64,000 nt of DNA from Selaginella moellendorffii (Eukaryota; Plantae; Lycopodiophyta), in assembly GCF_000143415.4 (NCBI RefSeq), contig NW_003314368.1:82792-146791 (forward strand). The letters are read 5' to 3'. Numbering within the stretch: position 1 is the first letter of the stretch; every line of letters starts with the position of its first letter. The notes beneath the pieces are model-generated. The model was not told the DNA's origin and did not search any database. It saw only the letters and a list, made by a program, of their open reading frames with translations. Made by a program: the position numbers and the translations under genes. Positions 28,233 through 30,667 of the stretch are shown here, in pieces.

Positions 28233-29410
28233 TTATGCTTTGCTGCCTTGCAAAAGAAAAGATCGTCGCCTAGAAGAGTTCCATCGTTGAAAAGCAAGCA
28301 TAAATACCCATGTAGCGCGCGAGACCTTCTCTTTGATCATCATGAGAAAGGCGGCACTTAGAATTGTCTTAAGAACCTGTGCTTGGATTCCCTTGTAAAA
28401 TCCGAGAATTCCTTCTTGTTTCTGGATGAGAGTAAACGCGTCCACCATTCTCTTTGGCCTCGAGTACTCTTCGTCGTCTTTCTTGTCACCCGACTGGATC
28501 ATAACTTTGCACCTAAAGCCGGAAGAAATCCTGAATTGAGAACTCTTCTTTACGGAGTAACCTGAGGACTTTACCTGATTGCTGGATACGTGATGAGAGT
28601 TGCCACCGTCTTAGAGATCGCTCCCAGAAGAAACGCGTGGAATGCTGATAGAACCAGCGGCGATGATCCAGCTTTTCTCACTCTTTGCTGTAGCAATCGC
28701 GTTTTGAGTTGCTCAAAGACTGTGTACTGGCAAAACCAGAGCATTATCAAGTCGAAGCTAGGAAAACCAAGGAAGAAGAAAAATGCAAACCTGGATTGCC
28801 GGATTACATGTAAGAAAAAGAGAAGCTCCCAATCCATCGAACGATTCCTTCCAGTTCGCGGACAAAGTAGCCCAGAGTCCCTTGGATTTTCCAAAGCCGC
28901 TGGTTTGCATTCGTGAAGAAGCAGTGTCAAGAGGCTAAAACGAGAAACGAAAGATAGTTATCTTCGATCGTCAATCTCGAGCTAGGAAAACTTACTTGAG
29001 TGACGATCGAATTGCAAGCGCCGGCAGCAGCAGCGACGACGAGATTTGCTCCCAATCCCATGCTCTTGTTCTTGCTCCGCTGGAGATATAGCCGCTTCAA
29101 GTAGCTATAGCTGTAAAAATAGATGAACTGCGAGAGGAGCGATTGCAAGTTCTTGGCGCCCAGGCCCTGATACAGCGCCAGCACCCGGTTGGATGCAATG
29201 GCTTCGCGAAGAACATCCAGGAGCGACCTACAATCGCCCCCAAAATCTGAAATGGATAGTTTGTGCGATCGCTTCTTACCGATATTTGTATGAATTCCCC
29301 GCCTTGAGCTCCGCTTGATACTTGGATTTGCACGTATCGAGGGGATAGAGGATCGTCGTGGTGAAGAGGCCGCCGATCGCGCCCGCGGTGGCATCGGCAA
29401 GGGCCTCCAT
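28233..29410 (-). CDS. PNC: Peroxisomal adenine nucleotide carrier (mitochondrial carrier family)
   Basis: [80 protein letters not shown]. Confidence 0.9.
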
Positions 29411-29516: not shown

Positions 29517-30667
29517 ATGGCACAGGTGGAGGAGAAGACGAAGGCGAGCGCGGCGTGGGAGGAGCTAAGGTCGAGAGATTCTTCTCTAAAGGCGAGGGCC
29601 GAGGCTGTCCTCCAGCGCGCGTATGGGCGGAAGGATTCGCCAGCAGTGAAGCCCACGAAATCGTCTTCGTCTCCACCAGTAGGGCTTGTTCTTGCAAGAT
29701 TTCGTCTAATCCTCGCAGTGTGATCTAGGGATGGATGATCAGCCTTGGAATGGTGCCCAAAAAGAAGGATGCGGCCGAAATTTCTTCCACCGATCCGCCT
29801 GAAATCGACAATGTTTCAGATGCCGATCGAGAGGATACTCGCAGGATAGCGGCTGCTGCTCTCGCGGCTACTAGATCTGGAGCGCCAGCGCCAAAGGTAT
29901 TTTCTCGATTCTCTTTCTTTCTATAGAGCCAACAGGTATCTAGATTCAATACATTCTCGTATTGTCTCTTCGTGGTTTGGCTGAGATTATCCCGGGTTTT
30001 GCGACATGGAGTGGAGCATTACCTCCACGTCCATTACTGATTTGCCTGGAAAATGTCCCTTTTTTCCTTGTTTTGCTACTAGCCAACGGTATCTTGATTC
30101 AATACAGCTTCTATGCATTGTTTCATCGAAGTTTGGCTGATAGTTTTCTCAGGTTTTGCGACATGGAGTGGAGCATTACCTCCTCTTCCATTACTGATTT
30201 TGCCTGGAAAATTGTCCTTTGTTCAGAGACTCCATTTCGGAAGATCTTTCTTAGCGCTAGTTGTGTGTTCGTGGCTTTTCAAGTACTTGGTTCGTCGATT
30301 TTGATCACCTCTCTCGCAGGTTGTTGCTGCTGCTGCTGCTACTGCTGTGCCTCCCCAGAGCGATGCAAAGTCTAGCGACGCTGGAGAGAAGCGTAAACTA
30401 TCATCCGGACTGGACAATCTGCTAGAACAAATCCAGAAGAAACCGAAAGCGAACATCCTGGACAGATCGAAGAAGGATTGGGGCGAGTTTAAAGACGAGA
30501 AGGGTCTCACGGAAGAACTTGAGGCATACAAGAAGAGCGGTGACAAGTACTTGGACAAAGTAGCGTTTTTGCAGCGAGCGGACGATAGGGAGTACGAGAA
30601 AGAGCGTGACGCGCGTTTAGAGTACCAAGCAAAGCGTAGACTAGGAGCAAGCTATCAAGACGATTAA
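29517..30667 (+). CDS. SWC5: BCNT/CFDP1-domain protein (SWR1 subunit SWC5); 3 exons
   Basis: C-terminal BCNT motif NILDRSKKDWGEFK...EELEAYKK...YLDKVAFLQRAD. Introns about 29679-29727 and 29897-30319. Confidence 0.85.
29927..30056 (+). ncRNA. Intronic box H/ACA snoRNA, copy 1 (dual 18S rRNA guide)
   Basis: Hairpin-H box (AGATTA 29984-29989)-hairpin-AAA tail. Pockets ggtatct/tcgt and ttgcgac/tact are complementary to 18S ACGA-UC-AGAUACC and AGUA-UG-GUCGCAA, with 14-16 nt spacing to the boxes. Confidence 0.8.
30081..30214 (+). ncRNA. Intronic box H/ACA snoRNA, copy 2
   Basis: Tandem paralog with near-identical guide strands and a compensatory change in the upper stem (aga/tct to tga/tca). H box is degenerate (ATAGTT). 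Confidence 0.65.

Follow-up and report, generated by a model that had tools for sequence, protein, structure and literature searches.

Probable tandem box H/ACA snoRNA genes of snoR5/snoR72 type in the last intron of an SWC5-type gene of Selaginella moellendorffii

The last intron of an SWC5/BCNT-type gene of the spikemoss Selaginella moellendorffii is eight times longer than the first intron of the same gene (423 vs 50 nt). A preliminary inspection of the letters alone (the sequence-only reading) had proposed that it harbors two tandem H/ACA snoRNAs directed against 18S rRNA. The intron, its host gene and the surrounding DNA were analyzed within the window, i.e. the whole stretch of 64,000 nt from contig NW_003314368.1 (positions 82,792 to 146,791 of the forward strand). 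The locations of all features described below are given in Table 1.

Table 1. Features of the SWC5/BCNT-type host gene and of the predicted snoRNA units in its last intron (positions within the window)
Feature	Position	Strand	Description or basis
Host exon 1	29517-29678	+	SWC5/BCNT-type gene, modelled exon by exon
Host intron 1	29679-29728	+	50 nt
Host exon 2	29729-29896	+	phase 0 at its end, followed by the GT donor; translation, BLASTP against exon 2 of L003
Host intron 2 (last)	29897-30319	+	423 nt, GT...AG; carries the predicted snoRNA units
snoRNA copy 1 (predicted)	29927-30055	+	~129 nt; fold, RNAalifold, pair counts, covariance-model self-match
Copy 1, pocket 1 5' guide GGUAUCU	29935-29941	+	pairs with 18S AGAUACC; sequence, 18S consensus
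Copy 1, pocket 1 3' guide UCGU	29970-29973	+	pairs with 18S ACGA; 14 nt before the H box
Copy 1, H box AGAUUA	29984-29989	+	fits ANANNA; 14 nt past the hairpin 1 upper stem
Copy 1, pocket 2 5' guide UUGCGAC	29999-30005	+	pairs with 18S GUCGCAA
Copy 1, pocket 2 3' guide UACU	30035-30038	+	pairs with 18S AGUA; 15 nt before AAA
Copy 1, AAA in place of the ACA box	30050-30052	+	15 nt past the hairpin 2 upper stem
snoRNA copy 2 (predicted)	30081-30213	+	~133 nt; fold, alignment, pair counts, covariance-model self-match
Copy 2, guides	30088-94, 30126-29, 30156-62, 30192-95	+	sequence, alignment
Copy 2, hinge AUAGUU	30140-45	+	no valid H box
Copy 2, AAA	30208-10	+	16 nt past the hairpin 2 upper stem
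Decayed partial third unit	30214-30290	+	alignment, repeat search, fold z +1.7
Host exon 3	30320-30667	+	BCNT domain and stop codon; phase 0 join at 30320

The host exons were compared singly, each by itself. A BCNT domain (Pfam PF07572, E 8.3e-27, 73 of the 75 profile positions covered), the signature of SWC5/CFDP1-type proteins, is encoded by exon 3 and is also present in the homologues. This exon is 78% identical over 80 residues to that of the plant homologue L003, and the exon starts agree. The conserved WM(I/V)SLG motif (here WMISLG) opens exon 2 and was found by BLASTP at the same place in L003. When exon 2 is read past its donor, the frame reaches a stop codon at 29924-26, after 10 codons, and exon 3 is in frame from its first nucleotide; the 423-nt segment is therefore an intron and not an exon. 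This agrees with the unusually long intron of about 420 nt noted earlier, and the read-through stop contradicts inclusion of the segment as an exon. A (TGC) repeat of 7.7 copies is located at the start of exon 3 (30325-30347), where it encodes an alanine run just before the BCNT domain.

The intron carries two units arranged head-to-tail on the sense strand of the host, and appears to have been enlarged by this payload. A repeat search revealed blocks spaced 153-158 nt start to start, while pairwise alignment showed the copies to be 91% identical after trimming and 88% identical when the flanks were included, so that the proposed duplication with a 154-nt period is real. It was not reported by Tandem Repeats Finder. 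The minimum-free-energy fold of both copies is hairpin-hinge-hairpin-tail, as had been described (-41.2 kcal/mol, z -2.7, for copy 1 and -35.6 kcal/mol, z -2.1, for copy 2), and RNAalifold produced the same four helices with both internal pockets open. In the written-out H/ACA structure, which comprises 33 pairs, 97% of the positions are paired across both copies, compared to 30-46% in controls with shifted partners.

One pair, at the base of the hairpin 1 upper stem, shows a double compensatory change (A29942-U29969 in copy 1, U30095-A30125 in copy 2), in accordance with the compensatory stem change that had been claimed for copy 2. Two other pairs have one-sided changes that preserve pairing, and two are broken. 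With only two sequences, the covariation does not reach significance (261 of 500 shuffles were equally good), so that it does not prove the structure but leaves it compatible with the repeat. The guide positions are conserved at 21 of 22 sites compared to ~19-20 expected from the overall divergence, a difference that, with only two copies, does not demonstrate selection. The underlying substitutions were counted by eye, region by region, on the alignment of the two copies.

In box H/ACA snoRNAs, which measure about 120-160 nt, the canonical distance between pocket and box is 14-16 nt, the H box has the form ANANNA, and the ACA box is located three nucleotides from the 3' end. The distances observed here, 14 nt to the H box and 15 or 16 nt to AAA, fall inside this range; both these values and the positions of all motifs had been given exactly by the sequence-only reading. 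Pairing with the rRNA amounts to 7+4 bp in pocket 1 and 7(+2 G-U)+4 bp in pocket 2, the two additional G-U pairs being possible at U29997-98 of copy 1. In shuffled sequences, the full two-pocket motif was expected 0.00 times in the window, while the half-motifs taken singly were weakly unexpected (0.10-0.17 per window).

The place of the ACA box is taken by AAA, which directly follows the 3' stem in both copies, with no ACA triplet nearby in either of them. In copy 1 the stem is followed by AAAAUG, in which the first AAA is the one listed in Table 1. This replacement had been considered an unusual point, together with the degenerate H box of copy 2. The latter was upheld (see below); the former is a documented variant, as AUA, AAA and AGA all occur as ACA boxes (PMC7991803, a review citing Ganot et al. 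1997).

The guide pockets are complementary to two stretches of the pan-eukaryotic 18S rRNA consensus: 5'-ACGA-U-C-AGAUACC-3' (pocket 1) and 5'-AGUA-U-G-GUCGCAA-3' (pocket 2). Rfam detected no rDNA in the window, and the targets were therefore tested on 18S sequences from elsewhere. The corresponding 13-nt DNA strings, ACGATCAGATACC and AGTATGGTCGCAA, are both contained in the Rfam SSU_rRNA_eukarya consensus, in which the unpaired uridines occupy model positions 1008 and 1126 and are thus 118 nt apart. In a metagenome scan, the two strings were found 95-120 nt apart in more than 112 stretches; the three that were checked were all identified by Rfam as eukaryotic SSU rRNA, with the target context as expected. 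A group I intron (Rfam RF00028, 95 bits) was observed at L048:671-973, in a metagenomic 18S gene from this target control.

The spacing of 118 nt is the same as that between U1000 and U1118 of Arabidopsis 18S rRNA. Both residues are pseudouridines mapped by Sun et al. 2019, as tabulated by Streit and Schleiff 2021 (PMC8351944, Supplementary Table 3), and both are assigned to snoR5/72. The first is equivalent to human U1056 and yeast U999, and the second to human U1174. The identification of the targets with yeast psi999/human psi1056 and human psi1174 in the sequence-only reading therefore holds, as both sites are listed in this table (Table S3). In yeast, there is no modification at the second site (PMC8351944). 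According to a study of Neurospora snoRNAs, Arabidopsis snoR5 corresponds at the first site to yeast snR31 and human ACA8 (PMC2780460).

The proposed membership of the snoR5 family was examined against published angiosperm snoR5 hairpin-1 and snoR72 hairpin-2 sequences in the supplement to PMC5122169. GGTATCT occurs 26 times in its file of 27 angiosperm snoR5 hairpin-1 sequences, nearly all of which also contain TCGT, and the snoR72 hairpin 2 sequences of Amborella, date palm, maize and beet consist of TTGCGAC, an upper stem and TACT. As judged by eye from these entries, the four guide elements of copy 1 are identical to those of angiosperm snoR5/snoR72 and are placed in the same hairpins, which supports the family assignment. 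The spikemoss and angiosperm RNAs also share the two-hairpin architecture, both targets and their order, a similar size, and a hairpin 1 lower stem that starts with GCC and ends with GGC. In contrast, visual comparison shows no relationship between their stem and loop sequences, and the 3' guide of pocket 1 is 4 bp long in spikemoss but up to 7 bp in angiosperms. The AAA in place of ACA, the location in an SWC5 intron and the tandem copies likewise distinguish the spikemoss units.

In the 2016 survey of plant snoRNAs carried out with snoStrip, snoR5 is scored as 0 in S. moellendorffii (PMC5122169). Four S. moellendorffii entries and ~190 Pinus taeda entries are listed under 'snoR72' in its supplementary files, and neither guide is present in them. 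These entries look like reverse-transcriptase coding sequence of retrotransposons, and thus like false positives. The occurrence of snoR72 throughout land plants, as reported in the survey, may therefore rest partly on such entries.

Searches with Rfam 15 identified no snoRNA family in the whole 64-kb window at gathering thresholds, and at the locus itself only chance lncRNA-type matches and no snoRNA family at E<=10; homology outside the guide elements is therefore not demonstrated. To assemble a synteny set, the protein encoded by the last exon was used to collect 27 BCNT relatives, seven of which supplied ten loci, at eight distinct places, from other plants and algae. The covariance model R1, which represents the two copies, matched nothing besides them in the window and the ten SWC5 loci. 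Having been built from two near-identical sequences, R1 would miss distant orthologues. Neither an Rfam family nor the joint guide motif was detected in the ten loci. Single matches to TTGCGAC...TACT and GGTATCT...TCG in L009 and L002 were rejected: they have no stems and are located in a short first intron, downstream of SWC5 or far from it.

The orthologous last SWC5 introns of L003 (949-1392) and L009 (2056-2513) are also long, at ~440-460 nt, and 73% identical to each other. They gave no match to Rfam or R1 and contain no sharply conserved block. With no R1, Rfam or joint-motif match in the eight SWC5 places, there is no sign that SWC5 is an old host of this snoRNA. Of the checks that the sequence-only reading had suggested, Rfam and SWC5 intron synteny were negative: no family matched at gathering thresholds or at E<=10, and the element was absent from the eight SWC5 loci of other plants and algae.

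The two copies differ in their state of preservation. Copy 1 is most likely a working gene, as judged from its sequence, with every canonical feature save AAA for ACA. The claim that copy 2 keeps the guides is correct for three of the four elements; the 3' element of pocket 1 is UCGA (TCGA in the DNA) and not UCGU, with the loss of one guide base pair. Its second hairpin is almost unchanged compared to copy 1. The hinge reads GAUAGUUUUC and fits none of the forms ANANNA, ANANA and ANANNNA, the last two of which are H-box variants mentioned in PMC12218528. The function of copy 2 is doubtful because this hinge provides no valid H box. As it also has one guide pair fewer, this copy may be decaying, and it is probably either weakly functional or a young pseudogene. 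The partial third unit has decayed: it retains a leader that resembles the stretch preceding copy 1, as well as the hairpin 1 3' strand (TTGTGTGTTCGTGGCTT at 30261-30277 resembles this strand), while the GGTATCT guide is gone and no stable fold is formed (z +1.7).

Taken together, these results argue that the spikemoss intron encodes a tandem pair of box H/ACA snoRNAs belonging to the plant snoR5/snoR72 family, an interpretation to which we assign a probability of about 0.86. Copy 1 very probably guides the formation of two conserved 18S pseudouridines, and we infer that the spikemoss units are expressed, processed, bound by protein and active in rRNA modification. The units would be transcribed within the SWC5/BCNT pre-mRNA and released by exonucleolytic trimming of the spliced intron, with the mature RNA protected by a core of dyskerin (Cbf5), Nop10, Nhp2 and Gar1 assembled at the H box and the 3' AAA. 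Hairpin 1 would pair with the first of the 18S stretches given above and present the uridine equivalent to Arabidopsis U1000, human U1056 and yeast U999, and hairpin 2 would pair with the second and present the equivalent of Arabidopsis U1118 and human U1174.

An alternative is that both units are relics, pseudogenes of a snoR5/72-type snoRNA that no longer yield stable RNA, the working guide being located elsewhere in the genome or lost. The AAA found instead of ACA in both copies could be viewed in this way, as could the missing H box and the lost guide pair of copy 2, and the adjoining decayed unit shows birth-and-death turnover at the locus. We regard this explanation as decidedly unlikely. 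Copy 1 keeps its four guides exactly as in angiosperms, together with intact stems, an ANANNA box and correct spacing, and AAA is an accepted variant of ACA (PMC7991803). Moreover, since AAA is common to both copies, it predates the duplication, and hairpin 2 has not decayed in its wake. How rapidly an unconstrained copy decays here can be seen from the third unit.

It is very improbable that the intron contains a structured element with another role, such as control of SWC5 splicing or a small-RNA precursor, whose complementarity to rRNA is coincidental. The hairpins are stable on the opposite strand too (z -2.7 on each strand), the element lies 30 nt from the 5' splice site, and the half-motifs are singly only mildly unexpected, all of which would be compatible with such an element. 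Coincidence would, however, have to account for two independent 11-nt bipartite matches at exactly the two 18S sites of snoR5/72, in the same hairpins as in that family and with correct pocket geometry and box distances, and the joint motif is expected 0.00 times by chance. The eight other SWC5 loci lack the element, which is therefore not a conserved feature of SWC5 splicing. The least probable explanation is a functionless duplication, either random or derived from a transposon. A tandem duplication in a non-coding intron that matches nothing in Rfam could have arisen in this manner, but the covariance model finds no further copy in the window, and the geometry of guides and boxes argues against this origin just as it does against an element with another role.

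The snoRNA reading thus remains the preferred one, and under it the locus looks like an unlisted spikemoss counterpart of snoR5/snoR72, a real lycophyte member missed by Rfam and by the 2016 survey. Homology searches had not placed this family correctly outside flowering plants. The pairing of both 18S guides on one RNA would then be old in vascular plants, so that the dual-guide design could be dated to early vascular plants, and the locus predicts two pseudouridines in spikemoss 18S rRNA. The known mechanism of H/ACA guides is left unchanged, and the value of the locus lies mainly in annotation and in the dating of this design. A more far-reaching proposal is that dual-guide snoR5/72 is no younger than the common ancestor shared by lycophytes and seed plants, that AAA became fixed in spikemoss, and that copy 2 accumulates and works via its 3' hairpin alone; in this complete form it is unlikely. 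If copy 2 did work without an H box, it would provide an instance from nature of a plant H/ACA RNP with relaxed box requirements.

Outside plants, the nearest functional equivalents are yeast snR31 and human SNORA8 (ACA8), which guide the modification of the same universally conserved 18S uridine (yeast 999, human 1056; PMC2780460, PMC8351944). They show no sequence match to the spikemoss units in Rfam at E<=10. The arrangement also differs in Neurospora, where the guide for the first site is carried by the ACA-proximal hairpin (PMC2780460), whereas in spikemoss it is in the 5' hairpin. The organization of the locus resembles that of tandem snoRNA clusters in introns of plants and green algae, where several diverged copies of the same guide follow one another in sense orientation within a single enlarged intron of a protein-coding gene. 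The reported clusters are mostly of the box C/D type, while the units described here are H/ACA and the host encodes a chromatin-remodelling subunit.

In plants, it is ordinary for tandem snoRNAs to be clustered within introns of various host genes. The chromatin-remodeller host, which had been singled out as unusual, is a curiosity. The locus provides a further example of birth-and-death turnover among tandem intronic snoRNA copies. On the opposite (-) strand, ~100 nt upstream of the SWC5 start codon, a divergent first exon was identified at 29276-29410. Its product looks like a mitochondrial or peroxisomal carrier, and the arrangement suggests a possible bidirectional promoter common to SWC5 and the divergent gene.
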